A stretch of 64,000 nucleotides of DNA from contig NIVC01003590.1 of the NCBI GenBank assembly GCA_002269645.1, forward strand, positions 25,281-89,280. Direction: 5' to 3'. This document shows positions 10,576 through 64,000 of the stretch, piece after piece. This DNA comes from Macrostomum lignano (taxonomy: Eukaryota). A program made the translations under genes and the position numbers. How positions within the stretch are numbered: the first letter of the stretch is position 1; the number at the start of each line of letters is the position of its first letter. Under the pieces are notes generated by a model. It was not told where the DNA came from, ran no database searches, and saw nothing but the letters and a program-made list of their open reading frames with translations.

Positions 10576-10781
10576 AGACTTCTCTCCTATTGGCTGTGGC
10601 ATTGCGCAGACAAACTACTGAAGGAATTGCAGTCACAAGTGAATAGAATGGCTTATATTTTGACTTTTGATTACTTAATTTTTGATAAAGTACTTCTTGG
10701 TTTTCAACGTTTGTGTCAATTCGGCACCCTCAAAATACTTAGATGATTAGGTACCCATTGATTTGCCTTGTCAGCTGCTCG

Positions 10782-31105: not shown

Positions 31106-34100
31106 TCAGACCCAGTCGCTTCGGCAGAACAGCAGCAGGTAGTGGCTCCGCCGGCCGTCCTCAAAGTGCGAGTTGAAGAACTTTTTGCGCAGGGTGAAGC
31201 CGCGAGTCTCCAGCAGGCCGCGCAGGCGGGGCAGCAGCGAGTCGAACAGCAGGATGTGCGACGGCCGCCGCTCGGTGTCCAGCAGGCGGGAGGCGAAGCC
31301 GGCGGGGTCGCTGTAGAAGGCCTCCTGCTCCTCGACGTAGCCCGGCTGGTCCCGCCAGTTGGGCGAGCAGTCCAGAGTCCGAGTGCTGACGTTGCTATGG
31401 AGATGGGAATAGAGCGGAGTGGAGTGACAGGGCGCCAGGAACAGAAAGTGCAGGTCGGGATCCAGGTGCGCGGGGACACCGGTCCTGGTGAGGCGCAGCT
31501 CCGCGTCCTTGCCCAGGTGGTTCACCGCGTCCAGAGGCCCGCGCTGGTGGATGAGGCAGAAGTACAAGGCGGCTGGGATGCCCAGGCAGCAAAGGCAGGC
31601 AACAGCGGCTTTGCGCAGGGCGGGGCCGAGCTCGCTGAGGCAGAGGCCGCACTGGTGCATCATCAGCGGCAGCAGCGGGAACACGAAGCGGAACTCCTTG
31701 TGGGCCAGGAAGCTGCGGGGTGGGGCGGAGCGTGGCTGTACAGGACATTGAAATCTGTACAAGATATTGAATCTGTACAAGATATTGAATCTGTACAATA
31801 TATTCCAATATGTACAAGATATTGAATCTGTACAAGATATTCCAATATGTACAAGATATTGAATCTGTACAAGATATTGAATCTGTACAAGATATTGAAT
31901 CTGTACAAGATATTGAATCTGTCGAGACATAGAAATCTGTAACTGATATTGCAATATGTACAAGATATTGCAATGTGTACAAGATGTAGAATCTGTACAA
32001 AATTCAATTTTGTACAGAATGTTCTACAAAGAATTACACTCTGTACAAGATATTAAAAACTGTACAAAATATCGATATTACAAGATATTACAAGATATTA
32101 GAAGCTGTAGATGTGGAATCTGTACAAGATTTTCCAAACTTTACAAGATATTACGTCATTCAGCTGTACAATGTCATCTACAATATGCAAACAAACAGTA
32201 AACAGTGGGAATGTACAAAAGCACCAGCAGACCCACCTGTACACATACAGCGTCCAGATCACCAGCAGGGTCAGCGCGGTTTCTACACGCCGCCTCTGCC
32301 TCCAGCTCTGATAGCTGGCGTACAGGTACAGCGGCAGGTGCGGGCCCAGGATGGCCGGTATTCCTGAAATTTCATTTGGTAATAAAATAATCATTCTTGC
32401 AAAACGCGCACCAGCTACTTTAAATTAAATCGAAAGTAGCTATCGAAAACCAGCTACTTTCTCGATGAATTCCCATAAATCTCGATGATTTCCCATAAAT
32501 CTTGATGATTTCCCATAAATCTTGATGATTTCCCATAAATCTTGATGATTTCCCATAAATCTTGATGATTTCCCATAAATCTTGATGATTTCCCATAAAT
32601 CTTGATGATTTCCCATAAATCTTGATGATTTCCCATAAATCTTGATGATTTCCCATAAATCTTGATGATTTCCCATAAATCTTGATGATTTCCAATTAAC
32701 CTCTATGATTTCTCATAAATCCTGGTGAGATGCCAGGCCGCTCACCCTGCGTGATGTACCAGTGCCACGGGTGCACCCCATAGAACGAGCCGATGTCGCT
32801 CAGCAGATTGTAGTGCAGAAAGTTGAGCTGGGACAGGGTCCAGCGGCCATAGTAGTGTTTGTCAGCCAGGCCGCTCACCGCCAGCACCAGCAGGCCAGTG
32901 GCGCCATAGAGCGCCAACACGCGCCCCAGCCGACGCCGACTCCGCGCCGCGTGCCACAGGCAGAGCATCAGCCAGGGCACCGCCGAGGTCGGCCGGAGTG
33001 CGCAAGCGGCGGCGACCGCCAGGGCGAATTTCCACTGGGCCTTGCGGCTCTGCGCCTCGGGCCACGGGTAATAGTACAGGCCCACTGTGGTCAGCAGCCA
33101 CTCCACGCAGTTCGACAGCGTCCGAGGCGCGGTGTACAGGGTGAACCAGTTCAGCAGCTGGCAGATCAGCGCCCACTGGGCAGCCCGCTGACCGGCCACT
33201 CGCCGGCTGAAGCGGTACAGGTAGAAATCCGCCACGGCGGCCAGGCAGGCCTGCAGCAGCCGCGGCAGCTTCGCCACGGCCAGCCGGCTGTCCGCTCCGG
33301 CCAGCTGCAGCAGCTTGAACAGCAGGGCGAAGGCGCCCGGGTACAGCGGGCTGCGCAGCCCCGCCTGCCACTCCCAGGTCAGGTGGCCGTAGCCGAAGGC
33401 CGACCTGCAGTTTGGGGGGGTGCTCGACACTGTCACTCTGGCAACCTGACATATTGTCATTCTGGCACACTGTCACTCTGACATACTGTCGATCTGGCAC
33501 ACTGTCACTCTGACACGCTGTCACTCTGGCACACTGTCACTCTGGCAAACTGTCACTCTGACACACTGGCATACTATTTACTCTGGCACACTGGCATACT
33601 ATTTACTCTGACACACTGGCATACTATTTACTCTGGCACACTGGCATACTGTCACTCTGGAAACCTGGCATACTGTCATTCTGGCACACTGTCACTCTGA
33701 CACACTGTCACTCTGGCACACTGTCACTCTGACACATTGTCACTCTGGCACACTGTCACTCTGACACACTGTCACTCTGGCACACTGTCACTCTGGCACA
33801 CTGTCACTCTGGTTCACAGTCACTCTACCGCCCGCATACCAACCTGTGCGCCACCTCCACAGACTGCCAGAACTCGTCGGGCACAAAGTGCGTGTGCAGC
33901 AGCAGGGCGTTGGCGCAGCGGAACGCCACCAGCGACAGGAACAGGCCGCGCTCGGTCAGCAGCGACCGCCGCAGCGGCTCGGGCCCGACAGTCTCCGACG
34001 GCTCGATGGCTGCGTCCCGGTCCTCCTTAGTGGCCTCCGGGCCCCACCACAGCCGGCCGAGCAGAGACTCTCCGGCGCCGGCCTGCTGGCCGGATCGGCG

Positions 34101-35345: not shown

Positions 35346-38300
35346 TCACAGGTGGGCGGCGGCAGGCGGCAGCGGCCAGCAGATTTTCTCGCCAACTTTG
35401 ATGGTGCGGAACTCCGCCACGTTCTGCCGCCTCTGCCTCGCCTCCTCCATGGCTTCGCGAAGGTCCTCTGGCGGCTGCAGCAGGCCCTGGGGGTGTGGGT
35501 TGGACACTTCCTATGGTGCAGTTATGGCAGAGCATCCTATACCCTAGTAACCCCGAACCCAAGCAACCCCACATCCTAGCAGACCCACACCCCGACAACC
35601 CCACACCCTAGCAACTCCACACACTAGCAACACCACACCCTAGCAACCCCACACCCTAGCAACCCAACACCCTGCAACCCCACACCCTGGCAACCCCACA
35701 CCCTAGCAACCCAACACCCTAGCAACCCAACACCCTGGCAACCCCACACCCTAGCAACCCCACACCCTAGCAATCCAACACCCTAGCAACCCAACACCCT
35801 AGCAACCCAACACCCTAGCAATCCAACACCCTAGCAACCCCACACCCTAGCAACCCCACACCCTAGCAATCCAACACCCTAGCAACCCAACACCCTAGCA
35901 ACCCCACACCCTAGCAACCCGACACTCTAGCAATCCAACACACTAACAAACCCACACCCTAGCAACCCCACACCCTAGCAACCCCACACCCTAGCAGCCC
36001 CACACCCTAGCAACCCCACACCCTAGCAACTCCACACCCTAGCAACCCCACACCCTAGCAACCCCACACCCTAGCAACCCCACACCCTAGCAACCCCACA
36101 CCCTAGCAGCCCCACACCCTAGCAACCCCACACCCTAGCAACTCCACACACTAGCAACACCACACCCTAGCAACCCCACACCCTAGCAACCCAACACCCT
36201 GCAACCCCACACCCTGGCAACCCCACACCCTAGCAACCCAACACCCTAGCAACCCAACACACTAACAAACCAACACCCTAGCAACTCCACACCCTAGCAA
36301 CTCGACACCCTAGCAACCCCACACCCTAGCAACCCCACACCCTAGCAACCCCACACCCTAGCAACCCCACACCCTAGCAACCCCACACCCTAGCAACCCT
36401 ACACCCTAGCAACCCCACACCCTAGCAACCCAACACCTCGACAACCCCACACCCTGTCAACCCCACACCCTAGCAACCCAACACCCTAGCAACCCAACAC
36501 ACTAACAAACCAACACCCTAGCAACCCCACACCCTGGCAACCCCACACCCTAGCAACCCCACACCCTAGCAACCCCACACCCTAGCAACCCCACACCCTA
36601 GCAGCCCCACACCCTAGCAACCCCACACCCTAGCAACTCCACACACTAGCAACACCACACCCTAGCAACCCCACACCCTAGCAACCCCACACCCTAGCTA
36701 CCCCACACCCTAGCAACCCCACACCCTAGCAGCCCCACACCCTAGCAACCCCACACCCTGCAACCCCACACCCTGGCAACCCCACACCCTAGCAACCCAA
36801 CACCCTAGCAACCCAACACACTAACAAACCAACACCCTAGCAACTCCACACCCTAGCAACTCCACACCCTAGCAACCGCACACCCTAGCAACCCCACACC
36901 CTAGCAACCCCACACACTAACAAACCAACACCCTAGCAACCCCACATCCTGGCAAACACACACTTTGGCAACCCCACACCCTAGCAGCTCACAAGTGCGC
37001 AATGCCGCTCACCTCTCGAGTTGTCATCCTGAAGGCGCCCCAGTGGATGCCCACAGACAGTTTGCTGCGGACCTCCTGGTGGATGATCACCGCCTCACTG
37101 GGACACGCGTGCTGCACTGAGAAAACTTCTCTGTAGAAAGAGATTAATGGCAGAAAAATGAGCTGTGTCAATGGAATTACAGCACACCGAGAGAACCCGG
37201 TTGTCACTCACCGGGGCTCATAGCAGCCAATTGGAATGGCGGACAGGCTGAAAGGCCCGAAATTCTGGCCTAAAAAGGTCAAATCGATCAGCTGCTCTGA
37301 TTCACTTTAATAACCATCTAAATTGCCTTCTATTCAGAATTGAATAAATATCAAATATGAAATCCGCTCAGTCCTTAGCAACCGCACGCACACAGGGAGT
37401 ACATCTGCCTGACATTCTCACCGTCAAGCTGCAGTGAGCACGTCAATCTGTGCACCAGGGGATCCAACTTCAAGAGCACAAATCGCACGAGTCGCAGGCC
37501 AACTTCCCTACACAAGCAACTCCACACACTGGCAACACCACACACTAGCAACCCCACACCCTAGCAACCCCACACACTAGCAACGCCACACCCTAGCAAC
37601 GCCACACCCTAGCAACGCCACACCCTAGCAACGCCACACCCTAGCAACCCCACACACTAGCAACCCCACTCCTAGAAACCCCACACACTAGCAACCCACA
37701 CCCTGGCAACCCCACACCCTGGCAACCCCACACCCTAGAAACTCCACACACTAGCAACCCCACACCCTAGAAACCCCACACACTAGAAACCCCACACCCT
37801 AAAAACCCCACACACTAGCAACGCCACACCCTAGCAACGCCACACCCTAGCAACCCCACACCTTAGCAACCCCACACATTAGAAACCCCACTCCTAGAAA
37901 CCCCACACCCTAGAAACCCCACACACTAGAAACCCCAACACCCTAGCAACCCCACACACTAGCAATCCCACACCCTAGAAACCCCACACACTAGCAATCC
38001 CACACACTAGCAACCCCACACACTAGCAACTCCACACACTAGCAACCCCACTCCTAGAAACCCCACACACTAGCAACCCCACACACTAGCAACCCCACAC
38101 ACTAGAAACCCCACACCCTAGAAACCCCACACCCTAGAAACCCCACACACTAGCAACGCCACACCCTAGCAACGCCACACCCTAGCAACCCCACACACTA
38201 GCAACTCCACACACTAGCAACCCCACTCCTAGAAACCCCACACACTAGCAACCACACACTCTAGCAACCCTACACCCTAGAAACCCCACACACTAGCAAC

Positions 38301-39563
38301 CCCACAACCTAGAACCCCACACACTAGAAACCCACACACTAAAAACCCCACACCCTAGAAACCCCACACCCTAGAAACCCCACACCTTAGATTGGCCTAG
38401 AAAACCCCACACCCGAGAAACCCCACACACTAGAAACCCCACACCCAAGAAACCCCACACCTTAGAAACCCCACACCCAAGAAACCCCACACCCTAGAAA
38501 CCCCACACCCTAAAAACCCCAAACCCTAGAAACCCCACACCCTAGAAACCCCACACCCTAGAAACCCCACACCCTAGAAAACCCACACACTAGAAACCCC
38601 ACACCCTAGAAACCCCACACACTGGAAACCCTACACCCTAGAAACCCCACACACTAGCAACCACACACAAAACCGGGCCAAATTGTGCTCAGGCCCCAGG
38701 TTAACGCGACTCAGGGCTCCGCAAGTCTCACCCCAGAGGCTTGAATTTCTTAGGCAATTTTTCTATAATTCTGACAGCAAAGTTCTCAGATCCAGCAGCT
38801 CACCGATGTCCTTGAAAATCCTGTCCTGATAGCCGGTGTCGCCAGCAAAGAACGCACTGTGCTGTCCGAACTGCAGCACGAAGCTGCCCCACAGACTGCA
38901 GTTTCTGTCCATGGCCCCGCGCCCACTCCAGTGACTGGCGGGCGTGAAAGTCACGCTGAGACCTTTGACAGTCTCCTCAGCTGCCTGCCACCACTTCAGT
39001 TCCTGGATATCTTTAAAGCCAAACTTTTGCATAATCATCCTGTCTCCAGCCGGCACAAAACATTGAATGTTTGGCATCTTTTTTGCCAGCTCCTTCAGGG
39101 TTTTCTCGTCCATGTGGTCCATGTGGTTGTGGCTGATGCACAGTGCGTGAATCTCGGGGAGGTCGCCCACCTGGCAGGCGGACGGGATGTGCCTGCTGGA
39201 CCCGGTGAACCTTGTTGGCCCAATGAAGTTGCTGAAGTTCGGATCGCACAGAACTCGCACTGTGCTGTTGTCCCCTGCAGGGCTGTCACCATAGAAGGTG
39301 AAGAGGCAGGAGGCGTGGCCCAGCCAGGTGAGCCACACTGTGTTCGGTTCGAAAGTGGGGAACTCGCACCCGTTTTTCACCTGATGCTCAGAGAATTCTG
39401 TGGGCGCTCCGTGTCTCTTGAATGGGTTGGAGGCTACAAATAAAGAGTAGCCAAGAACACTAGGCAGCTGGAAATCCCAGGGACAGCTGTAGGTCACACC
39501 ATTGCCAAACTTCCAAGGTGTCTCCTTTGCATGCAGCAGACCATCATTCTCTGCAGATGCCAT
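35346..39563 (-). CDS. NAPEPLD: NAPE-PLD-like metallo-beta-lactamase-fold hydrolase, 4 exons (39563-38804, 37269-37212, 37130-37013, 35486-35346)
   Basis: TWLGHAS, CDPNFS, ISHNHMDH (HxHxDH), PASHWSGR, FFAGDTGY, GPFSLSAIPIGCYEPR, IHWGAF, PPEDL; start codon uncertain (an acceptor-like CTGCAG lies just downstream of it). Confidence 0.88.
35550..36988. repeat. 16-bp minisatellite (CCCCACACCCTAGCAA), ~90 copies
   Basis: Last intron of the NAPE-PLD-like gene. Confidence 0.95.
37525..38668. repeat. 16-bp minisatellite of the same family (CCCCACAC(A/C)CTAG(C/A)AA)
   Basis: First intron of the NAPE-PLD-like gene. Confidence 0.95.
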
Positions 39564-40376
39564 TTCCAAAGCAGAAGTGCCAAGCAATAAAAATTATCAA
39601 ACAGTATATACTATAGATTCATGTTTGTGGCAAATTTTATTTTAAATTTTATTCACTAATTCCCTACAAAATAATATAATTCCTAAATATAGTCACAATT
39701 GTCCTTTAGATCATTTAATATTCTATATGGCAAATAATATTCCTATTCCCTATTGGAATAAATGTTAAAAACCCACGGATGCGCACTTTAGAAAAGAGTC
39801 AAACTATTTTACTGCGCTTTAAGATTATAAGAGATGTTCCAAAAGATCTGCAGTTTCATCAAAATCAAAATTCACAAACTTTCCAAAATCAAAATTGAAA
39901 TTTCCCAAAATCATAATTCAGAAAAACAAAGTTTAGTATGATCAACACTCACTTTTTTACTTTCAATTTACTGCTTAAGCAAAAAGTAATACATGTATAT
40001 GTAGTAGAAAGTAGTTGATTTTTAGCAACTTTTTAGACACTACCAAAATTTTCACTTCTAATTTTTTTTCAAAATTGAAATTTGCTCTAAAAAATTCAAA
40101 TTTTGGAAAATTGAAATTGAATTTTCGGAATATCTCTAAGCTTAATAAATTACAAGTGTATAAGCCCCTTCAACAGAGGTATTATACCCATTTCCATGTA
40201 TATGTATTTGCTAGAGCAGCAGCCAGTAAGAAAGGGCAGCGCGCGCACAGGGGCTGTGCCTGTGCACACGCTGCGCTTTAGAAAAATTTCAAAAGTGCGC
40301 CGGACACCATCCATGGTTTTACAACTTTTTCTTATAGGGTTCCCATTGACTCAAAGATTTTCCTATTTAGTCAACA

Positions 40377-42805: not shown

Positions 42806-45800
42806 TCAGCCGCCAGAAAATTCTTTCAGCATAACATCGGCAGCCTTCTTAGCCACCGCCACCACCAGCTCGTGCGGTCCACAGTCGGGCACCGACGGCA
42901 GGACGCTGGCGTCGACAATTCGCAGTCCTTGAATGCCCGGTGGGCTGAAAAATCGGTGATAGGCTTCTATAATTAAACACCCAAGAATTTACACATGCGA
43001 AATTCGCTAAGAAAACGTATAGTCCCAGTCTTCAAGAGTCGTTTGCTAAAATCAAATTGGTGCGAAAATCTATTTTTAGTGACTAGAGTGAAACGTCTGT
43101 GGTTTGAAAAGCTGAGAAAATTAATGGCGTTTCATCCTTTTCTATTAGGGCAGTTGGGCCCTGCGATTCCCGGAGTTCAGCATTTTTCTGGTTGCATGAC
43201 GCTGGCCCTTCATTCTTCAATACACGTATCTCACACTTAGCCGCGCTCATGGCATGGACTACTCAAAGTAGATTAGTTCAATTTGAGTAGCCCTTGACTC
43301 ATGGATTAAAAAATCTTAGGACTGCAGATATCAGCATCCTCTATAAGTTTTGGCTTTGAGCGACACTCAGTGAGCTAAGCATTCTAGCGATTCTCCCCAT
43401 GAGTTTTTTATAGTTGACAGGTCCGATATTATATCGTTGAATGGGAATCCTAAACCTAACACTATTTGGCCTGACTTCAGCTCAAGCTTCAAATTCTCAC
43501 CACAAATTACTTTTTTACTCGCAACACAGGCTTCGAAACACTGACGACCTGACCAACAGAAAATACAATTTCTTTGAGCTTAGTAGCGAGCCGCGAGACT
43601 TGAGCTCTACAGCCTACAGGCTTCCACAACGAATTTCTCACAATCAGCTCCGGCGCCATGGAGCTGTAGAATCAGCGAGCCCGGGGAAAGAAGATCACCC
43701 CCTCCAATCAGACCGTCAAGCGGCTATCAACACCCTGAGCGCAGAATCACCCGCTCGCGTGCATGTACAGTCCTCGGCTGCATCGCCCCCAACAATGTGT
43801 CCAACAAAGTGAAGGGATCCATGGGCACTCGGGCCATCCGGGGTTGAGAATTCGGAGCGCTTCATCCGTGAATGCCCCGCCTTTACTCAAGACAGGCTCA
43901 CCTACCTCGGCCCAAACCCGGACCTCTCCGACGTTTTCAGGCCCGAGAATCTCTGCCAGCTCGTCCGCTACCTAAGGGCTACTGGGCGAGCGACAGTCCA
44001 CCTCCTGGACTCTCCCTGCACGACACCGCAAGCACCAGCTGCCCGTGGTTGCCAGGGGTTAGCGGAATGGGTGGGGACGCCTCCGCGCTGTATCCGCATG
44101 CCCGGAACCTCTGCAGTTGAGATAAGTACGTCAAGAGCTGAGAGACACGTCGCCCACCATTTGATGGCGAGCAACGTAGCGTTTGATTTGGAACCGGCGC
44201 AACTGACAATGTCATTCATTCGCCTTCAGCGTTGCTCATGGCTTCGGCTATGGTTACAAGTATAAGGATGGTAATCAACCGATATTTAGGGACTATCGTA
44301 GGGACTATTAGGAATAGGACTTAGGTTTAGGTTAGGGAATTAGCGAATTGCATTGTTATCAGAGCGTGGTGGAGTGTAGCAGTTGTGGAAAGCTGCACTC
44401 TCACAAAAAGCCACAAGCGCTCGAGGTCGGTCGCAGGGTTGTCAATCCACAAGAACTTTGAGTTCTTTGAGGCTTTAACTCTCAGCCTGTCGCAGGTAGT
44501 CCAGCTCATCCAGTGTTGGACAATTGAATTGAAGCGAGGAGAAGCTGCTCACCAAGTGCAGGCAAGCTCACAAACTCTCATTGATTGGCTCAGTTTCATC
44601 AGGGGCATCTGTGCTCATGGTGCTCGGAGTGGTAGAACGTGGCCAATAAAATTTTTCTCAAACTTGTTCATCGACAAACCACATTTTGGAAGTACAAAAG
44701 ATGATCATGGCGTGAACGACCGCAGTGAGCAGCTCACATTGCGGCACTCACCGAAACTTGCCATCCAGAACTCCGCCCTGCGCCTTCGGCTTCATCGGCA
44801 CCGAGGCTGCATAATGATAGCTGCTGACTGCCGACCACCTGATGGAGCAGTCCAGCTGCCTGTCGCTCAGTTGATCGCCGTCGCCGCCTCCGCCGCAAAT
44901 CGCCGACATCGGCAGGTGGACGCGAAGCCGCCAGTTCGCGAGGCCTGGCGCGGTCCGCAGCCACCCGGCCAGCCGCCTGACCGAATTCCGCAGCCGCGCC
45001 ACGTCCGTCGGGCGGCTCAGGTAGGCCGGGTCTGGCCGCCGTCCGGCCCGCGCAGCTCCGCGGCTGCCTGGCCGCGCCAGCGTTAGCACCATCAGGAAGC
45101 CGTCGCGGTCGCCGGCCGGCCGCAGGCTGCTGACGAATTGGCGCCACGCCGCCGGACGGAAATTCGACGACCGGCGAAGCACCGGATTGTCCAGCTGGCT
45201 GCTGGCCAGCACGTACACCAGGGTGTCCGGCGGCATCCGGCCAGTCAGGATGATGGCGCCCGAGGTGGAGAGAAGGCCTGCAAAAGCGTGGGGGAGCTGC
45301 AGCAGCAATGCGCTCTTTTGGACCGGCAGAGCATCGGGATCTGCAATTTAGGGCGCTTCATGTGCACCGTCACATCCGCTTTCCAGAGTCGTGGGACTTC
45401 TTCACCCCTCTCCATCCACCCTCTCTGTCGTGCCGTGTAGTTGGCAAAATTGCTAGATGTATTTCACTTAGCAAACAGCCTATTTAATGATAACATGAGC
45501 GGGGGTTGATAGATCAATAACGAAAGGGGTCACGTGATGACAAATACTACGTACATGAAATCTAAGGGGTAGAGCCAGACAGGCCAAAGAGAGCAAGAGA
45601 GAAAGTGTGCATGTTGCCGGTGCACGTACATGATGACTAGTTAGTTAGTCACTGCAGTGCCTAGAGCTCAGCGCTCCGGCACCACAGTCTCAAAACCCTC
45701 TCCCCATTCACCCTCTCTAGTCCCCCCCATTCACCCTCTCTAGTCCAATCTCCATTTACCCTCTCTAGTCCCCCTCCCCATCCACCCTCTCTAGTCCCCA

Positions 45801-50830: not shown

Positions 50831-51320
50831 TGTATCAAAAGAAAACAAAGAAAAAATCATGTTTTGAATAAAAGTATAGCATTATTATTAGTATACGAGC
50901 CGTAGCCGATATTATTATTTGAAAAGCCCAACGCTCAATCAGTGATGGCACGTTCTATTCCATAGGATGGTAGCGTTTTAATTTTCTCGGGCAAATTTTA
51001 ATCTGAGCGCTAATAAGAGGAATGGATTTAAATCGAGGGGCTTATTTGCTTGATTTTGTTTATAATAGTTGTCAGGAAAATTTAAGGAAAAGTTGGCCTT
51101 CACCCGGCAGAGTTTAGTCTCGCATTGTTTTAGTCAAAATTGTACCAGCTGCTCACCTGAAAGAAAACAAAAAGGTATAAGACGCTTATAAGAACATATG
51201 CGAAATTGCTCTTAAATCCTTGATCATTTCATCCCTCACTAATAATAAATATATAGCCTTATAACCTTACGTGAGTTATAGTTGAAGCGTCACTCATACT
51301 AAGTAGCTGGAGTTTCTGGC

Positions 51321-54300
51321 TTAATTCTTAGTTTCCGTGACGACCGGGCCAGTGCTGGTCTCCGTGACGACCGGGCCAGTGCTGGTCTCCGTGACGACCG
51401 GGTCAGTGCTGGTCTCCGTGACGACCGGGCCAGTGCTGGTCTCCGTGACGACCGGGTCAGTGCTGGTCTCCGTGACGACCGGGCCAGTGCTGGTCTCCGT
51501 GACGACCGGGCCAGTGCTGGTCTCCGTCCACGAAGTCGACCCATCTGGATGGACAGTCTTAACCGTTTCTGAAATGAGAGGTCAGCAAAACATTTTTGCA
51601 GCAAAAAAGGTTCATGCACGTACGAGCGTACTACATGTGGCAAAGTTTTCGCTCACTGGTTCTTCCTCCAGAGTGACTGGATGTTGTGCTCGAAGATCCG
51701 CCTGCGAAACCGGAGAAATAATTTAAACATAAGCATGTCTAAACATAAAACCGCAAAACTAAGCTTTCAGTCGTTGAATTTCGTGGAAACTCAAGATACT
51801 CACTTCCAACTTTCACCGTCTTCCAACCCGACCAACCAGCGCTGCTCTTCTTTATGCCCGCACGCCCAGCTTTGCTCACGACTCCACCATCTAAAGTATT
51901 TGCAATTAGATATTATAGTTGTAAGAACAACTTTACCAAAAATATGAAATCAAACAAAACTAAAACGCCTGAGCAATATACTCTTAACAGGCTACAGAAC
52001 ACTCACCGGTCGTCTCCGAGATGAGTGTCTTGTATTCCCAGTTGTAGAGCTGATTCTGCTGCTCGACGATGTCATTAAAAACGTTACTTGTCTTAATGAC
52101 CTTCGACTGGAGACGCGATGTGACGCGCGTCAAACCCGATCGCAAAAGCGACCTACTCCGTTTTACCAGCCTCTTAAACTTCGGATTCGAGAGCTTTAAC
52201 TTCTTCTTAAGAGCCAAAACTTTCATAGTCAGCCGCTGCTGCAGTGCCTTAATCTTCAAAAGAGGAATCTTTCTTCGAGTGCTGAGAACCCTTTTAGCTA
52301 CCCGTTCAACTTGCGTCTTCTTTAATGTTCGCCTGCCAACAATTCCACGCACTGCGGAGCGAACTCTCAATCTTGGTTGGACCTTCATAATACGCTTAAC
52401 AGTCCCTCGAATATGCAATCGCGTCTTAACTGAATTTTTCTTTAAACGCAAAATTCTACGAACGCGACTCAACGATTTCACACGTCTATTCAAGCCTCTT
52501 CTCCGTTTGTAAACACGACGAGACAGACGCGGCAAAACAACCCTATGACCTGCAATATTGACCACTCGTCGGCTTACGATACGTCGCTTACTCACTCGTC
52601 GGCGTCGGCGGCGGACTACTTTTCGGCGGACCACGCGCTTGCGGATCACTCGTCGGCAGATGCGCTTGATCACACGTTTTGTCACGCGTCGTCCCTTAAT
52701 GACTCGGCGTCGGATGATGCGCTTGATCACGCGTCGTATCTTGCGTCGGCCCTTAGTCACTCGTTTGCGGACGACTCGTCGGATGATGCGCTTGACCTTG
52801 CGGACGCTGCGTTTAATGCGTTTAACGATACGTCGCTTACTCACTCGTCGGCGTCGGCGGCGGACTACTTTTCGGCGGACCACGCGCTTGCGGATCACTC
52901 GTCGGCAGATGCGCTTGATCACACGTTTTGTCACGCGTCGTCCCTTAATGACTCGGCGTCGGATGATGCGCTTGATCACGCGTCGTATCTTGCGTCGGCC
53001 CTTAGTCACTCGTTTGCGGACGACTCGTCGGATGATGCGCTTGACCTTGCGGACGCTGCGTTTAATGCGTTTAACGATACGTCGCTTACTCACTCGTCGG
53101 CGTCGGCGGCGGACTACTTTTCGGCGGACCACGCGCTTGCGGATCACTCGTCGGCAGATGCGCTTGATCACACGTTTTGTCACGCGTCGTCCCTTAATGA
53201 CTCGGCGTCGGATGATGCGCTTGATCACGCGTCGTATCTTGCGTCGGCCCTTAGTCACTCGTTTGCGGACGACTCGTCGGATGATGCGCTTGACCTTGCG
53301 GACGCTGCGTTTAATGCGTTTAACGATACGTCGCTTACTCACTCGTCGGCGTCGGCGGCGGACTACTTTTCGGCGGACCACGCGCTTGCGGATCACTCGT
53401 CGGCAGATGCGCTTGATCACACGTTTTGTCACGCGTCGTCCCTTAATGACTCGGCGTCGGATGATGCGCTTGATCACGCGTCGTATCTTGCGTCGGCCCT
53501 TAGTCACTCGTTTGCGGACGACTCGTCGGATGATGCGCTTGACCTTGCGGACGCTGCGTTTAATGCGTTTAACGATACGTCGCTTACTCACTCGTCGGCG
53601 TCGGCGGCGGACTACTTTTCGGCGGACCACGCGCTTGCGGATCACTCGTCGGCAGATGCGCTTGATCACACGTTTTGTCACGCGTCGTCCCTTAATGACT
53701 CGGCGTCGGATGATGCGCTTGATCACGCGTCGTATCTTGCGTCGGCCCTTAGTCACTCGTTTGCGGACGACTCGTCGGATGATGCGCTTGACCTTGCGGA
53801 CGCTGCGTTTAATGCGTTTAACGATACGTCGCTTACTCACTCGTCGGCGTCGGCGGCGGACTACTTTTCGGCGGACCACGCGCTTGCGGATCACTCGTCG
53901 GCAGATGCGCTTGATCACACGTTTTGTCACGCGTCGTCCCTTAATGACTCGGCGTCGGATGATGCGCTTGATCACGCGTCGTATCTTGCGTCGGCCCTTA
54001 GTCACTCGTTTGCGGACGACTCGTCGGATGATGCGCTTGACCTTGCGGACGCTGCGTTTAATGCGTTTAACGATACGTCGCTTACTCACTCGTCGGCGTC
54101 GGCGGCGGACTACTTTTCGGCGGACCACGCGCTTGCGGATCACTCGTCGGCAGATGCGCTTGATCACACGTTTTGTCACGCGTCGTCCCTTAATGACTCG
54201 GCGTCGGATGATGCGCTTGATCACGCGTCGTATCTTGCGTCGGCCCTTAGTCACTCGTTTGCGGACGACTCGTCGGATGATGCGCTTGACCTTGCGGACG

Positions 54301-57300
54301 CTGCGTTTAATGCGTTTAACGATACGTCGCTTACTCACTCGTCGGCGTCGGCGGCGGACTACTTTTCGGCGGACCACGCGCTTGCGGATCACTCGTCGGC
54401 AGATGCGCTTGATCACACGTTTTGTCACGCGTCGTCCCTTAATGACTCGGCGTCGGATGATGCGCTTGATCACGCGTCGTATCTTGCGTCGGCCCTTAGT
54501 CACTCGTTTGCGGACGACTCGTCGGATGATGCGCTTGACCTTGCGGACGCTGCGTTTAATGCGTTTAACGATACGTCGCTTACTCACTCGTCGGCGTCGG
54601 CGGCGGACTACTTTTCGGCGGACCACGCGCTTGCGGATCACTCGTCGGCAGATGCGCTTGATCACACGTTTTGTCACGCGTCGTCCCTTAATGACTCGGC
54701 GTCGGATGATGCGCTTGATCACGCGTCGTATCTTGCGTCGGCCCTTAGTCACTCGTTTGCGGACGACTCGTCGGATGATGCGCTTGACCTTGCGGACGCT
54801 GCGTTTAATGCGTTTAACGATACGTCGCTTACTCACTCGTCGGCGTCGGCGGCGGACTACTTTTCGGCGGACCACGCGCTTGCGGATCACTCGTCGGCAG
54901 ATGCGCTTGATCACACGTTTTGTCACGCGTCGTCCCTTAATGACTCGGCGTCGGATGATGCGCTTGATCACGCGTCGTATCTTGCGTCGGCCCTTAGTCA
55001 CTCGTTTGCGGACGACTCGTCGGATGATGCGCTTGACCTTGCGGACGCTGCGTTTAATGCGTTTAACGATACGTCGCTTACTCACTCGTCGGCGTCGGCG
55101 GCGGACTACTTTTCGGCGGACCACGCGCTTGCGGATCACTCGTCGGCAGATGCGCTTGATCACACGTTTTGTCACGCGTCGTCCCTTAATGACTCGGCGT
55201 CGGATGATGCGCTTGATCACGCGTCGTATCTTGCGTCGGCCCTTAGTCACTCGTTTGCGGACGACTCGTCGGATGATGCGCTTGACCTTGCGGACGCTGC
55301 GTTTAATGCGTTTAACGATACGTCGCTTACTCACTCGTCGGCGTCGGCGGCGGACTACTTTTCGGCGGACCACGCGCTTGCGGATCACTCGTCGGCAGAT
55401 GCGCTTGATCACACGTTTTGTCACGCGTCGTCCCTTAATGACTCGGCGTCGGATGATGCGCTTGATCACGCGTCGTATCTTGCGTCGGCCCTTAGTCACT
55501 CGTTTGCGGACGACTCGTCGGATGATGCGCTTGACCTTGCGGACGCTGCGTTTAATGCGTTTAACGATACGTCGCTTACTCACTCGTCGGCGTCGGCGGC
55601 GGACTACTTTTCGGCGGACCACGCGCTTGCGGATCACTCGTCGGCAGATGCGCTTGATCACACGTTTTGTCACGCGTCGTCCCTTAATGACTCGGCGTCG
55701 GATGATGCGCTTGATCACGCGTCGTATCTTGCGTCGGCCCTTAGTCACTCGTTTGCGGACGACTCGTCGGATGATGCGCTTGACCTTGCGGACGCTGCGT
55801 TTAATGCGTTTAACGATACGTCGCTTACTCACTCGTCGGCGTCGGCGGCGGACTACTTTTCGGCGGACCACGCGCTTGCGGATCACTCGTCGGCAGATGC
55901 GCTTGATCACACGTTTTGTCACGCGTCGTCCCTTAATGACTCGGCGTCGGATGATGCGCTTGATCACGCGTCGTATCTTGCGTCGGCCCTTAGTCACTCG
56001 TTTGCGGACGACTCGTCGGATGATGCGCTTGACCTTGCGGACGCTGCGTTTAATGCGTTTAACGATACGTCGCTTACTCACTCGTCGGCGTCGGCGGCGG
56101 ACTACTTTTCGGCGGACCACGCGCTTGCGGATCACTCGTCGGCAGATGCGCTTGATCACACGTTTTGTCACGCGTCGTCCCTTAATGACTCGGCGTCGGA
56201 TGATGCGCTTGATCACGCGTCGTATCTTGCGTCGGCCCTTAGTCACTCGTTTGCGGACGACTCGTCGGATGATGCGCTTGACCTTGCGGACGCTGCGTTT
56301 AATGCGTTTAACGATACGTCGCTTACTCACTCGTCGGCGTCGGCGGCGGACTACTTTTCGGCGGACCACGCGCTTGCGGATCACTCGTCGGCAGATGCGC
56401 TTGATCACACGTTTTGTCACGCGTCGTCCCTTAATGACTCGGCGTCGGATGATGCGCTTGATCACGCGTCGTATCTTGCGTCGGCCCTTAGTCACTCGTT
56501 TGCGGACGACTCGTCGGATGATGCGCTTGACCTTGCGGACGCTGCGTTTAATGCGTTTAACGATACGTCGCTTACTCACTCGTCGGCGTCGGCGGCGGAC
56601 TACTTTTCGGCGGACCACGCGCTTGCGGATCACTCGTCGGCAGATGCGCTTGATCACACGTTTTGTCACGCGTCGTCCCTTAATGACTCGGCGTCGGATG
56701 ATGCGCTTGATCACGCGTCGTATCTTGCGTCGGCCCTTAGTCACTCGTTTGCGGACGACTCGTCGGATGATGCGCTTGACCTTGCGGACGCTGCGTTTAA
56801 TGCGTTTAACGATACGTCGCTTACTCACTCGTCGGCGTCGGCGGCGGACTACTTTTCGGCGGACCACGCGCTTGCGGATCACTCGTCGGCAGATGCGCTT
56901 GATCACACGTTTTGTCACGCGTCGTCCCTTAATGACTCGGCGTCGGATGATGCGCTTGATCACGCGTCGTATCTTGCGTCGGCCCTTAGTCACTCGTTTG
57001 CGGACGACTCGTCGGATGATGCGCTTGACCTTGCGGACGCTGCGTTTAATGCGTTTAACGATACGTCGCTTACTCACTCGTCGGCGTCGGCGGCGGACTA
57101 CTTTTCGGCGGACCACGCGCTTGCGGATCACTCGTCGGCAGATGCGCTTGATCACACGTTTTGTCACGCGTCGTCCCTTAATGACTCGGCGTCGGATGAT
57201 GCGCTTGATCACGCGTCGTATCTTGCGTCGGCCCTTAGTCACTCGTTTGCGGACGACTCGTCGGATGATGCGCTTGACCTTGCGGACGCTGCGTTTAATG

Positions 57301-60300
57301 CGTTTAACGATACGTCGCTTACTCACTCGTCGGCGTCGGCGGCGGACTACTTTTCGGCGGACCACGCGCTTGCGGATCACTCGTCGGCAGATGCGCTTGA
57401 TCACACGTTTTGTCACGCGTCGTCCCTTAATGACTCGGCGTCGGATGATGCGCTTGATCACGCGTCGTATCTTGCGTCGGCCCTTAGTCACTCGTTTGCG
57501 GACGACTCGTCGGATGATGCGCTTGACCTTGCGGACGCTGCGTTTAATGCGTTTAACGATACGTCGCTTACTCACTCGTCGGCGTCGGCGGCGGACTACT
57601 TTTCGGCGGACCACGCGCTTGCGGATCACTCGTCGGCAGATGCGCTTGATCACACGTTTTGTCACGCGTCGTCCCTTAATGACTCGGCGTCGGATGATGC
57701 GCTTGATCACGCGTCGTATCTTGCGTCGGCCCTTAGTCACTCGTTTGCGGACGACTCGTCGGATGATGCGCTTGACCTTGCGGACGCTGCGTTTAATGCG
57801 TTTAACGATACGTCGCTTACTCACTCGTCGGCGTCGGCGGCGGACTACTTTTCGGCGGACCACGCGCTTGCGGATCACTCGTCGGCAGATGCGCTTGATC
57901 ACACGTTTTGTCACGCGTCGTCCCTTAATGACTCGGCGTCGGATGATGCGCTTGATCACGCGTCGTATCTTGCGTCGGCCCTTAGTCACTCGTTTGCGGA
58001 CGACTCGTCGGATGATGCGCTTGACCTTGCGGACGCTGCGTTTAATGCGTTTAACGATACGTCGCTTACTCACTCGTCGGCGTCGGCGGCGGACTACTTT
58101 TCGGCGGACCACGCGCTTGCGGATCACTCGTCGGCAGATGCGCTTGATCACACGTTTTGTCACGCGTCGTCCCTTAATGACTCGGCGTCGGATGATGCGC
58201 TTGATCACGCGTCGTATCTTGCGTCGGCCCTTAGTCACTCGTTTGCGGACGACTCGTCGGATGATGCGCTTGACCTTGCGGACGCTGCGTTTAATGCGTT
58301 TAACGATACGTCGCTTACTCACTCGTCGGCGTCGGCGGCGGACTACTTTTCGGCGGACCACGCGCTTGCGGATCACTCGTCGGCAGATGCGCTTGATCAC
58401 ACGTTTTGTCACGCGTCGTCCCTTAATGACTCGGCGTCGGATGATGCGCTTGATCACGCGTCGTATCTTGCGTCGGCCCTTAGTCACTCGTTTGCGGACG
58501 ACTCGTCGGATGATGCGCTTGACCTTGCGGACGCTGCGTTTAATGCGTTTAACGATACGTCGCTTACTCACTCGTCGGCGTCGGCGGCGGACTACTTTTC
58601 GGCGGACCACGCGCTTGCGGATCACTCGTCGGCAGATGCGCTTGATCACACGTTTTGTCACGCGTCGTCCCTTAATGACTCGGCGTCGGATGATGCGCTT
58701 GATCACGCGTCGTATCTTGCGTCGGCCCTTAGTCACTCGTTTGCGGACGACTCGTCGGATGATGCGCTTGACCTTGCGGACGCTGCGTTTAATGCGTTTA
58801 ACGATACGTCGCTTACTCACTCGTCGGCGTCGGCGGCGGACTACTTTTCGGCGGACCACGCGCTTGCGGATCACTCGTCGGCAGATGCGCTTGATCACAC
58901 GTTTTGTCACGCGTCGTCCCTTAATGACTCGGCGTCGGATGATGCGCTTGATCACGCGTCGTATCTTGCGTCGGCCCTTAGTCACTCGTTTGCGGACGAC
59001 TCGTCGGATGATGCGCTTGACCTTGCGGACGCTGCGTTTAATGCGTTTAACGATACGTCGCTTACTCACTCGTCGGCGTCGGCGGCGGACTACTTTTCGG
59101 CGGACCACGCGCTTGCGGATCACTCGTCGGCAGATGCGCTTGATCACACGTTTTGTCACGCGTCGTCCCTTAATGACTCGGCGTCGGATGATGCGCTTGA
59201 TCACGCGTCGTATCTTGCGTCGGCCCTTAGTCACTCGTTTGCGGACGACTCGTCGGATGATGCGCTTGACCTTGCGGACGCTGCGTTTAATGCGTTTAAC
59301 GATACGTCGCTTACTCACTCGTCGGCGTCGGCGGCGGACTACTTTTCGGCGGACCACGCGCTTGCGGATCACTCGTCGGCAGATGCGCTTGATCACACGT
59401 TTTGTCACGCGTCGTCCCTTAATGACTCGGCGTCGGATGATGCGCTTGATCACGCGTCGTATCTGCGTCGGCCCTTAGTCACTCGTTTGCGGACGACTCG
59501 TCGGATGATGCGCTTGACCTTGCGGACGCTGCGTTTAATGCGTTTAACGATACGTCGCTTACTCACTCGTCGGCGTCGGCGGCGGACTACTTTTCGGCGG
59601 ACCACGCGCTTGCGGATCACTCGTCGGCAGATGCGCTTGATCACACGTTTTGTCACGCGTCGTCCCTTAATGACTCGGCGTCGGATGATGCGCTTGATCA
59701 CGCGTCGTATCTGCGTCGGCCCTTAGTCACTCGTTTGCGGACGACTCGTCGGATGATGCGCTTGACCTTGCGGACGCTGCGTTTAATGCGTTTAACGATA
59801 CGTCGCTTACTCACTCGTCGGCGTCGGCGGCGGACTACTTTTCGGCGGACCACGCGCTTGCGGATCACTCGTCGGCAGATGCGCTTGATCACACGTTTTG
59901 TCACGCGTCGTCCCTTAATGACTCGGCGTCGGATGATGCGCTTGATCACGCGTCGTATCTTGCGTCGGCCTTAGTCACTCGTTTGCGGACGACTCGTCGG
60001 ATGATGCGCTTGACCTTGCGGACGCTGCGTTTAATGCGTTTAACGATACGTCGCTTACTCACTCGTCGGCGTCGGCGGCGGACTACTTTTCGGCGGACCA
60101 CGCGCTTGCGGATCACTCGTCGGCAGATGCGCTTGATCACACGTTTTGTCACGCGTCGTCCCTTAATGACTCGGCGTCGGATGATGCGCTTGATCACGCG
60201 TCGTATCTTGCGTCGGCCCTTAGTCACTCGTTTGCGGACGACTCGTCGGATGATGCGCTTGACCTTGCGGACGCTGCGTTTAATGCGTTTAACGATACGT

Positions 60301-63300
60301 CGCTTACTCACTCGTCGGCGTCGGCGGCGGACTACTTTTCGGCGGACCACGCGCTTGCGGATCACTCGTCGGCAGATGCGCTTGATCACACGTTTTGTCA
60401 CGCGTCGTCCCTTAATGACTCGGCGTCGGATGATGCGCTTGATCACGCGTCGTATCTTGCGTCGGCCCTTAGTCACTCGTTTGCGGACGACTCGTCGGAT
60501 GATGCGCTTGACCTTGCGGACGCTGCGTTTAATGCGTTTAACGATACGTCGCTTACTCACTCGTCGGCGTCGGCGGCGGACTACTTTTCGGCGGACCACG
60601 CGCTTGCGGATCACTCGTCGGCAGATGCGCTTGATCACACGTTTTGTCACGCGTCGTCCCTTAATGACTCGGCGTCGGATGATGCGCTTGATCACGCGTC
60701 GTATCTGGCGTCGGCCCTTAGTCACTCGTTTGCGGACGACTCGTCGGATGATGCGCTTGACCTTGCGGACGCTGCGTTTAATGCGTTTAACGATACGTCG
60801 CTTACTCACTCGTCGGCGTCGGCGGCGGACTACTTTTCGGCGGACCACGCGCTTGCGGATCACTCGTCGGCAGATGCGCTTGATCACACGTTTTGTCACG
60901 CGTCGTCCCTTAATGACTCGGCGTCGGATGATGCGCTTGATCACGCGTCGTATCTGGCGTCGGCCCTTAGTCACTCGTTTGCGGACGACTCGTCGGATGA
61001 TGCGCTTGACCTTGCGGACGCTGCGTTTAATGCGTTTAACGATACGTCGCTTACTCACTCGTCGGCGTCGGCGGCGGACTACTTTTCGGCGGACCACGCG
61101 CTTGCGGATCACTCGTCGGCAGATGCGCTTGATCACACGTTTTGTCACGCGTCGTCCCTTAATGACTCGGCGTCGGATGATGCGCTTGATCACGCGTCGT
61201 ATCTGCGTCGGCCCTTAGTCACTCGTTTGCGGACGACTCGTCGGATGATGCGCTTGACCTTGCGGACGCTGCGTTTAATGCGTTTAACGATACGTCGCTT
61301 ACTCACTCGTCGGCGTCGGCGGCGGACTACTTTTCGGCGGACCACGCGCTTGCGGATCACTCGTCGGCAGATGCGCTTGATCACACGTTTTGTCACGCGT
61401 CGTCCCTTAATGACTCGGCGTCGGATGATGCGCTTGATCACGCGTCGTATCTGCGTCGGCCCTTAGTCACTCGTTTGCGGACGACTCGTCGGATGATGCG
61501 CTTGACCTTGCGGACGCTGCGTTTAATGCGTTTAACGATACGTCGCTTACTCACTCGTCGGCGTCGGCGGCGGACTACTTTTCGGCGGACCACGCGCTTG
61601 CGGATCACTCGTCGGCAGATGCGCTTGATCACACGTTTTGTCACGCGTCGTCCCTTAATGACTCGGCGTCGGATGATGCGCTTGATCACGCGTCGTATCT
61701 GGCGTCGGCCCTTAGTCACTCGTTTGCGGACGACTCGTCGGATGATGCGCTTGACCTTGCGGACGCTGCGTTTAATGCGTTTAACGATACGTCGCTTACT
61801 CACTCGTCGGCGTCGGCGGCGGACTACTTTTCGGCGGACCACGCGCTTGCGGATCACTCGTCGGCAGATGCGCTTGATCACACGTTTTGTCACGCGTCGT
61901 CCCTTAATGACTCGGCGTCGGATGATGCGCTTGATCACGCGTCGTATCTTGGCGTCGGCCCTTAGTCACTCGTTTGCGGACGACTCGTCGGATGATGCGC
62001 TTGACCTTGCGGACGCTGCGTTTAATGCGTTTAACGATACGTCGCTTACTCACTCGTCGGCGTCGGCGGCGGACTACTTTTCGGCGGACCACGCGCTTGC
62101 GGATCACTCGTCGGCAGATGCGCTTGATCACACGTTTTGTCACGCGTCGTCCCTTAATGACTCGGCGTCGGATGATGCGCTTGATCACGCGTCGTATCTT
62201 GCGTCGGCCCTTAGTCACTCGTTTGCGGACGACTCGTCGGATGATGCGCTTGACCTTGCGGACGCTGCGTTTAATGCGTTTAACGATACGTCGCTTACTC
62301 ACTCGTCGGCGTCGGCGGCGGACTACTTTTCGGCGGGCGCGACACGCGCTTGCGGATCACTCGTCGGCAGATGCGCTTGATCACACGTTTTGTCACGCGT
62401 CGTCCCTTAATGACTCGGCGTCGGATGATGCGCTTGATCACGCGTCGTATCTTGCGTCGGCCCTTAGTCACTCGTTTGCGGACGACTCGTCGGATGATGC
62501 GCTTGACCTTGCGGACGCTGCGTTTAATGCGTTTAACGATACGTCGCTTACTCACTCGTCGGCGTCGGCGGCGGACTACTTTTCGGCGGACCACGCGCTT
62601 GCGGATCACTCGTCGGCAGATGCGCTTGATCACACGTTTTGTCACGCGTCGTCCCTTAATGACTCGGCGTCGGATGATGCGCTTGATCACGCGTCGTATC
62701 TGCGTCGGCCTTAGTCACTCGTTTGCGGACGACTCGTCGGATGATGCGCTTGACCTTGCGGACGCTGCGTTTAATGCGTTTAACGATACGTCGCTTACTC
62801 ACTCGTCGGCGTCGGCGGCGGACTACTTTTCGGCGGACCACGCGCTTGCGGATCACTCGTCGGCAGATGCGCTTGATCACACGTTTTGTCACGCGTCGTC
62901 CCTTAATGACTCGGCGTCGGATGATGCGCTTGATCACGCGTCGTATCTTGCGTCGGCCCTTAGTCACTCGTTTGCGGACGACTCGTCGGATGATGCGCTT
63001 GACCTTGCGGACGCTGCGTTTAATGCGTTTAACGATACGTCGCTTACTCACTCGTCGGCGTCGGCGGCGGACTACTTTTCGGCGGACCACGCGCTTGCGG
63101 ATCACTCGTCGGCAGATGCGCTTGATCACACGTTTTGTCACGCGTCGTCCCTTAATGACTCGGCGTCGGATGATGCGCTTGATCACGCGTCGTATCTTGC
63201 GTCGGCCCTTAGTCACTCGTTTGCGGACGACTCGTCGGATGATGCGCTTGACCTTGCGGACGCTGCGTTTAATGCGTTTAACGATACGTCGCTTACTCAC

Positions 63301-64000
63301 TCGTCGGCGTCGGCGGCGGACTACTTTTCGGCGGACCACGCGCTTGCGGATCACTCGTCGGCAGATGCGCTTGATCACACGTTTTGTCACGCGTCGTCCC
63401 TTAATGACTCGGCGTCGGATGATGCGCTTGATCACGCGTCGTATCTGCGTCGGCCCTTAGTCACTCGTTTGCGGACGACTCGTCGGATGATGCGCTTGAC
63501 CTTGCGGACGCTGCGTTTAATGCGTTTAACGATACGTCGCTTACTCACTCGTCGGCGTCGGCGGCGGACTACTTTTCGGCGGACCACGCGCTTGCGGATC
63601 ACTCGTCGGCAGATGCGCTTGATCACACGTTTTGTCACGCGTCGTCCCTTAATGACTCGGCGTCGGATGATGCGCTTGATCACGCGTCGTATCTGCGTCG
63701 GCCCTTAGTCACTCGTTTGCGGACGACTCGTCGGATGATGCGCTTGACCTTGCGGACGCTGCGTTTAATGCGTTTAACGATACGTCGCTTACTCACTCGT
63801 CGGCGTCGGCGGCGGACTACTTTTCGGCGGACCACGCGCTTGCGGATCACTCGTCGGCAGATGCGCTTGATCACACGTTTTGTCACGCGTCGTCCCTTAA
63901 TGACTCGGCGTCGGATGATGCGCTTGATCACGCGTCGTATCTGCGTCGGCCCTTAGTCACTCGTTTGCGGACGACTCGTCGGATGATGCGCTTGACCTTG
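51321..64000 (-). CDS. 3' part of a giant polycationic repeat protein (>4,000 aa visible, 5' end outside the window); exons >64000-52007, 51701-51657, 51568-51321
   Basis: R/K/V/I frame continues ~190 aa into unique sequence, then phase-1 donor ACC G|GTGAGT, acceptor TTTCGCAG|, 45-nt symmetric exon GGSSSTTSSHSGGRT, donor A|GTGAGC, acceptor TCATTTCAG|, final exon KTVKTVHPDGSTSW(TETST[G/D]PVV)7TETKN*; indels appear above 59460. Confidence 0.75.
51335..51527 (-). repeat. 27-bp coding minisatellite encoding TETST(G/D)PVV, ~7 copies
   Basis: Unit length is a multiple of 3 and in frame with the spliced last exon. Confidence 0.85.
52575..64000 (-). repeat. 249-bp tandem array, ~46 copies, encoding an 83-aa unit
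   Basis: GATACGTCGC at 52578 recurs at 52827; identical translations in three frames up to ~59450 imply nucleotide-identical copies. Confidence 0.98.

Follow-up and report, generated by a model that had tools for sequence, protein, structure and literature searches.

What does a tandem array encode, if anything, when it runs without a break of frame into the exon of a real gene? This question is raised by a 64,000-nucleotide stretch of the flatworm Macrostomum lignano (assembly GCA_002269645.1, contig NIVC01003590.1, positions 25,281 to 89,280 of the forward strand; hereafter the window, with coordinates counted from its first letter), which ends in an array of 249-base-pair (bp) units. Read on the minus strand, each unit specifies 83 residues, nearly all of them arginine, lysine, valine or isoleucine. 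The explanation proposed here, to which a little under an even chance is given, assigns the array to an orphan gene on the minus strand, as the 5′ part of its large exon, enlarged by repeat expansion. The product would be a giant polycation, the probable role of which is to bind polyanions as a protein that is secreted or stored in granules. On the narrower point, that the array is translated, the evidence tips slightly toward yes.

According to Tandem Repeats Finder, the array (52576..64000, minus strand; ~11.4 kb) consists of 45.9 copies of the 249-bp (83-codon) unit with 99% matches. It is cut by the window edge at 64000, with the gene continuing in its 5′ direction past that edge. Copies 1–27 (52576–59298) are 100% identical, base for base, and adjoin a unique flank in which long reads can be anchored; copies 28–46 carry 13 indel events and one recurrent substitution. 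The minus-strand translation of the unit contains 34 Arg, 14 Lys, 16 Val, 12 Ile, 2 Gly, 2 Thr, 2 Ser and 1 Cys, an exact match to the sequence and composition claimed in an earlier reading made from the letters alone (the sequence-only reading). Lys and Arg together make up 58% of the unit, Val and Ile 34%, and Gly 2.4%; the net charge is +48, and there is no acidic residue, no aromatic residue and no methionine. The valines and isoleucines come in pairs, with two or three basic residues between one pair and the next. Each unit also contains four R-x-[KR]-R motifs, which are possible processing sites, and a 57-bp (19-codon) sub-repeat. The hydrophobic signal is strongest at 78 degrees (4.6 residues), a spacing expected neither of an amphipathic α-helix (100 degrees) nor of a β-strand (160–180 degrees). 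No DNA copies of the unit occur outside the array in the 64-kb window, and at the protein level the only likeness within the window is in the adjacent tail. The tail does not consist of degenerate in-register copies of the array, as its nucleotide identity to the unit (31%) equals background.

Downstream of the array, the minus strand carries a spliced gene. A query composed of the last partial unit, the unique tail and the spliced downstream exons retrieved a single entry, UniRef A0A1I8JLP0 of M. lignano (185 amino acids (aa), E 1e-93), the exons of which were placed by tblastn at 52388..52008, 51890..51805, 51568..51504 and 51156..51133, with 184 of 185 residues identical. By this degree of identity, the window belongs to M. 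lignano, and the locus is the gene of A0A1I8JLP0 or a near-identical duplicate. Between the array and the annotated methionine lies a unique bridge of 62 codons (52389..52575, minus strand) in which the same frame is open. The rest of the large exon (52007..52388, minus strand) starts at the A0A1I8JLP0 methionine (MKVQPRL...), matches that protein at 126 of 127 aa, is predicted to be helical, and ends in phase 1 at a GTGAGT donor (52006). It is followed by exon B (51804..51890, minus strand; DGGVVSKAGRAGIKKSSAGWSGWKTVKVG), which is of phase 1-1, lies between an AG acceptor and a GTGAGT donor, and is identical to the gene model, and by a candidate 45-bp cassette exon C (51657..51701, minus strand; SGSSSTTSSHSGGRT), also of phase 1-1 with canonical splice sites, which is absent from the UniProt model. 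Exon D (51321..51568, minus strand) encodes KTVKTVHPDGSTSW and then seven 27-bp repeats, each specifying TETSTGPVV (51334–51527); its first 22 aa match the gene model. In a read-through model, exon D ends with TETKN and a stop codon at 51323..51321. The UniProt model exits the 27-bp repeat early via a weak GTCGTC donor and continues, after the acceptor TTTCAG, in an alternative last exon (51130..51156, minus strand) encoding VSSWYNFD and a stop. The minus-strand introns have GT[AG]AG donors, AG acceptors and compatible phases. These canonical GT-AG introns, together with an independent gene model, bear out the minus-strand gene structure of the sequence-only reading, which had also placed the unique segment (~52007–52575) and the 27-bp repeat correctly; its start coordinate, 51321, proves to be the end of the read-through stop codon.

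The case that the array is coding starts from this junction. The period of the unit is a multiple of three (249 = 83 × 3), and the only open minus-strand frame of the array is the one that is continuous, through the 62 unique codons, with A0A1I8JLP0. In this frame, the Lys and Arg content falls stepwise from the 58% of the unit to 39% in the bridge, 28% after the methionine and 8% in the C-terminal exons, while Val, Ile and Leu together account for 34, 32, 29 and 17%, respectively; the bridge, like the unit, has no acidic residue. Compared with the other genes of the window, the array frame shows the best synonymous-codon fit of all six frames (+0.07, vs. -0.33 and -0.51 for the open plus-strand frames), and the preferred codons AAG, GTG/GTC and ATC agree between the two sets. 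Within the unit, 15 of the 15 strongest self-similarity offsets are multiples of 3. These data make translation of the array somewhat the better bet. As far as can be judged from the alignment, only the 3′ end of the gene that bears the array is annotated, in the form of A0A1I8JLP0.

The length of the open frame is another matter. Uninterrupted, the minus frame runs from 59474 to 51987, which amounts to 2,496 codons (27.7 units plus ~195 unique codons) with a net charge of ~+1,330, its 5′ limit being set by the first frame-breaking indel upstream from the tail (59463, minus strand). The openness of the array is a property of one 83-codon unit. With dinucleotide-preserving shuffles of the 249-bp unit as the chance baseline, the given minus frame is open in 5–8% of shuffles and the plus frames in 16–22%; three of the six frames are open in the real unit, and three or more are open in 2% of shuffles. 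Two plus-strand frames are likewise open across the array, over 2,309 and 2,426 codons. Long open reading frames (ORFs) over tandem arrays come cheap in the M. lignano genome; for instance, an array of 42 copies of a 35-bp unit at 12887–14352 contains ORFs of 502–563 aa in all three minus frames. Because openness reduces to a single unit, and because antisense frames and other minisatellites are open as well, ORF length alone is weak evidence. The coding case therefore rests on the other evidence, above all on the in-frame junction with a real gene.

The alternative that survives best is that the array is untranslated, which is held to be a serious possibility although short of an even one. 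It would then be a minisatellite-like expansion, possibly derived from the 5′ coding part of the gene, that is now located in an intron, a trans-splicing outron or a 5′ untranslated region, or is a decaying pseudo-exon, and only a small basic helical protein of ~185–250 aa, A0A1I8JLP0, would be made. The setting is favorable to such an origin, as simple and tandem repeats constitute 15% of the M. lignano genome and 39% of its genes are trans-spliced (PMC5730564). The window itself is rich in non-coding minisatellites, dozens of them intronic, some 100% identical and open in several frames. The array resembles them in being composed of near-identical tandem copies among dozens of arrays. It differs from them in size, the units of the window minisatellites being 8–143 bp and their arrays at most 3.1 kb, vs. 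249 bp and more than 11.4 kb here, and in its multiple-of-3 period, its position in frame with a coding exon, its matching amino acid character and its superior codon usage.

Several observations weigh against the proposed explanation, and most of them also count for the untranslated alternative, beginning with the abundance of non-coding minisatellites and the chance openness of the minus frame and of the plus-strand frames described above. The annotated model begins only at the methionine at 52388, which is 62 codons past the 3′ end of the array, and does not include the 249-bp repeats; none of the M. lignano proteins from NCBI or UniRef in the searched database contains the unit. The visible uninterrupted frame has no start codon, because the unit has no methionine and copies 28–46 are out of frame. 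No signal peptide is visible, the N-terminus being situated beyond the window. Within the array there is no evidence of purifying selection, because the copies are identical, and the diverged internal sub-repeats do not carry such a signal either: their differences by codon position (3/5/4, 4/5/4, 5/3/4 and 3/1/3) are small counts with no third-position excess. AlphaFold2, run without an alignment on two units, returned a predicted local distance difference test score (pLDDT) of 51, which is uninformative. As assembled, copies 28–46 are out of frame, so that 5′ of 59474 the same frame is split by indels into pieces of 139–422 codons. On the other side, the array shares its frame with the gene, the same amino acid character is graded through 62 unique codons upstream of the methionine, the codon usage is the best of six frames, and both the period and the internal offsets are multiples of 3.

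The indels themselves deserve a closer look. Beyond the one at 59463, further frame-breaking indels occur at 59711, 59968 and more upstream. Ten of the 13 events, that at 59463 among them, fall at one hotspot, at plus-strand unit positions 166/167, and the others in copies 28–46 comprise two one-base losses in a CCC run and one complex +4 change. Written on the minus strand, the hotspot exists in four states, namely CGC-AAG-ATA (the reference), CGC-CAG-ATA (3 copies), CGC-AG-ATA (8 copies) and CGC-CAAG-ATA (1 copy). Independent real mutations of all three kinds (deletion, substitution, insertion) are improbable at a single nucleotide; the four states resemble the calls that consensus software would derive from a column in which A and C are mixed. 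The frameshifts of copies 28–46 are thus probably an artefact of assembly or consensus calling. It is also routine for gene callers to cut a model short where a repeat is unassembled or masked and to begin again at the first methionine, which would likewise keep the array from being annotated. PacBio data underlie the published M. lignano assemblies, and Pilon was used to polish Mlig_3_7 (PMC5730564).

With regard to the sequence-only reading, its central claim of a giant repeat protein is partly supported: the array is in frame with a real gene, but in the assembly the 46 units do not make up a single unbroken protein. Similarly, its estimate of ~46 units agrees with the 45.9 copies counted by Tandem Repeats Finder, although the assembly does not present them as a single open frame. 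Its charge of over +2,000 across the copies would apply only if the indels of copies 28–46 are errors; the uninterrupted frame falls well short of it, at the value given above.

Neither the unit nor the annotated protein could be assigned to a family, as the sequence-only reading had stated for the unit. A two-unit query had no match at E<=0.001 among 5.8 billion proteins, and in an exhaustive HMMER search A0A1I8JLP0 matched only itself among 1.84 billion representatives. Pfam searches with the unit, the tail and A0A1I8JLP0 detected no domain, only sub-threshold noise, and Rfam and transfer RNA scans of the window detected nothing. By these searches, the A0A1I8JLP0 gene is a lineage-specific orphan for which no relatives were found. 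The UniRef name of the protein, N-acetylmuramoyl-L-alanine amidase, appears to be spurious, an annotation error on an orphan basic protein, as Pfam finds no amidase domain in it and only a sub-threshold Rubicon-homology match (E 0.08). Literature searches on the accession A0A1I8JLP0, on Macrostomum satellites and on arginine-rich Macrostomum proteins yielded nothing specific; the array is unannotated as coding sequence, and no description of it as such was found in the literature searched. For A0A1I8JLP0, AlphaFold2, again run without an alignment, predicts long helices over residues 8–127 (pLDDT ~55–88, with the highest values toward the end of this range), followed by a linker that is disordered and a small sheet of three strands, at a predicted template modeling score of 0.26.

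Translation of the array would give a product of four parts: (i) the 83-aa Arg/Lys/Val/Ile module, each copy of which contributes +48, in 28 or more copies and probably in excess of 46; (ii) a basic, helical, non-repetitive segment of ~190 aa; (iii) a small β segment; and (iv) a tail of Thr/Ser/Pro-rich nonapeptide repeats. Such a protein would be a very large multivalent polycation that acts by its charge. In a secreted matrix or a secretory granule, it would bind and condense polyanions, for instance glycans that are sulfated or acidic, or else a partner protein of acidic character. The paired valines and isoleucines and the one cysteine of each unit could add hydrophobic and disulfide cohesion. 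The C-terminal exons are 46% Ser/Thr/Pro, and with its seven TETSTGPVV repeats the C-terminus looks mucin-like, a hint of secretion. The secreted-polycation reading is put forward because of this C-terminal composition and the precedent of two flatworm adhesive proteins, Mlig-ap1 and Tmed-ap3, by which M. lignano and other flatworms are known to produce and secrete polycations of thousands of residues with such a proposed mode of action (PMC6410801; PMC9229212). Specifically, a function as a secreted polyanion binder, with secretion, tissue and partner taken by analogy, is given clearly less than an even chance.

Mlig-ap1 is a protein of the same species. It contains more than 3,600 aa of Lys/Arg-rich regions with a calculated isoelectric point (pI) above 14 (Wunderer et al., 2019; PMC6410801). 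It is proposed to act by binding polyanions electrostatically; this action is blocked by heparin, and a releasing factor of negative charge has been postulated (PMC6410801). The action suggested for the array product would be analogous to the role proposed for the Gly/Arg/Lys flanks of Mlig-ap1, and both would be giant tandem-repeat polycations of thousands of residues with no homologues outside flatworms. However, the repeats of Mlig-ap1 are of Gly/Arg/Lys low complexity, as represented by the antibody peptide SRKPRRKNRKSRKP (PMC6410801; PMC8621496), so that the sequence-only reading was right to describe them as compositionally different; the unit described here has only 2 Gly, is one-third Val/Ile and repeats with an 83-aa period. 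Mlig-ap1 also has a core of C-lectin, vWD, C8, TIL and EGF domains, whereas none is visible here, with the 5′ end outside the window, and the C-terminus in the present case consists of a basic segment of helical character and then the TETSTGPVV repeats. Identity with Mlig-ap1 was rejected on the composition as described and on the lack of a sequence match, the presence of Mlig-ap1 in the searched database being unconfirmed.

The ap3 proteins, Tmed-ap3 of Theama mediterranea and Mile-ap3 of Minona ileanae, are likewise comparable, as they are stand-alone giant polycations that consist almost entirely of basic low-complexity repeat (PMC9229212). Tmed-ap3 is 3,700 aa long, has a pI of 13.24, is 88% Lys, Arg, Gly, His and Ser, and has a demonstrated signal peptide (PMC9229212). 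The ap3 proteins are secreted by adhesive glands and are hard to assemble from short reads (PMC9229212). They differ from the unit described here in their GRKHS motif and in having no aliphatic component, as opposed to its richness in Val and Ile (PMC9229212). By its composition, the unit falls outside the Gly/Arg/Lys low-complexity definition that applies to ap1 and ap3 (PMC8621496; PMC9229212).

Giant Lys/Arg-rich repeat proteins are therefore already known in flatworms as a general kind, and what is suggested here, tentatively and with less than even confidence, is that M. lignano possesses a second and unrelated class of giant polycation. Such a protein would exceed 3,800 residues and +2,200 in charge, combine 58% Arg/Lys with Val/Ile pairs and neither acidic nor aromatic residues, be encoded by a lineage-specific gene, and belong to an uncharacterized secretory, adhesive or defensive system.

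A second alternative accepts that the array is translated but places the product inside the cell, as a polycation of the nucleus or of sperm that would condense DNA or RNA much as protamines do, perhaps once cut into shorter peptides. Protamines are Arg-rich proteins with cross-linking Cys, and the 58% Lys and Arg of the unit with its one Cys recall them. Protamines and protamine-like proteins share with the unit the abundance of Arg, the lack of acidic residues, in some cases the cross-linking Cys, and the capacity to neutralize the charge of a polyanion. The four R-x-[KR]-R motifs per unit would be suited to cleavage, and the lack of a visible signal peptide is consistent with an intracellular location. 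On the other hand, protamines measure tens to a few hundred residues and are not rich in Val/Ile, whereas the frame here is 2,496 codons long and the product would exceed 2,500–3,800 aa, orders of magnitude above protamines or protamine-like proteins. A Val/Ile content of 34% is atypical of them, Pfam finds no histone H1-related or other domain in the unit or the tail, and the Ser/Thr/Pro-rich C-terminal repeat looks extracellular. An intracellular role is accordingly held to be improbable.

Least probable by far is a plus-strand product, a hyper-acidic Ser/Ala/Asp-rich repeat protein starting at an ATG (52545) 30 bp before the array in a frame open from 52446 to 59723: codon usage and gene structure led to the rejection of the candidate ORF (52545–59726), which is judged to be a by-product of the antisense strand, as its synonymous-codon fit is poor (-0.33), its Leu codon is always, by eye, the CTT that is rare in the genes of the window, its start lies inside a coding exon of the minus-strand gene with canonical introns and an independent gene model, and plus frames are often open even in shuffled units, the scarcity of A on the plus strand of the array being the reason why frames antisense to Lys/Arg-rich coding sequence tend to stay open.

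The locus bears on wider questions whichever way it is decided. If translated, the array would specify a natural block polymer in which extreme cationic charge is combined with β-branched aliphatic residues, a design that matters for biomaterials based on coacervates or adhesives and for the question of how polybasic chains are made and stored in cells. It would be among the most positively and densely charged large natural polypeptides described, and a solution distinct from the Gly/Arg/Lys flanks of adhesive proteins. M. lignano would then have evolved giant polycations at least twice, and their roles, whether in adhesion, release, granule packing or defense, could be compared by RNA interference in a species well suited to such work. 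The current annotation appears to reduce a multi-kilobase coding repeat to a mis-named 185-aa protein, and other repeat-rich genes of M. lignano may share this fate. If the array is not translated, it would serve as a cautionary case from a minisatellite-rich genome, in which an in-frame array with a 2,496-codon ORF is nonetheless non-coding.

The remainder of the window is a landscape of short repeats and exons, and its genes are in keeping with an animal genome. Tandem Repeats Finder reports 124 rows in the window, many of them overlapping, with units mostly of 9–75 bp and arrays of 0.2–3.1 kb. These minisatellites sit between and inside GC-rich exons, and several are 95–100% identical. One of them, 30 copies of a 19-bp unit at 27554–28127, is 100% identical, and another, 193 copies of a 16-bp unit at 35541–38668, has a strong strand skew. 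An apparent multi-exon gene on the minus strand (15897–27311) encodes many C-type lectin domains in a mannose-receptor-like arrangement (Pfam Lectin_C, E 1e-14 to 1e-60), and introns filled with minisatellites lie between its lectin exons. At 38763–39587 (minus strand) there is a NAPE-PLD-like MBL-fold hydrolase exon, with M. lignano BOX15_Mlig028902g3 as its best relative in the searched database at only 41% identity; judged from this comparison, the paralogue seems to be missing from the sets of M. lignano proteins held there. Other recognizable segments include an ALG9-family mannosyltransferase domain (Glyco_transf_22) at 32696–33460 (minus strand), a DHHC palmitoyltransferase domain at 10743–12027 (plus strand), and a segment resembling the C-terminus of GMC oxidoreductases at 44748–45308 (minus strand), the latter two ranges each including an unscanned neighboring ORF.

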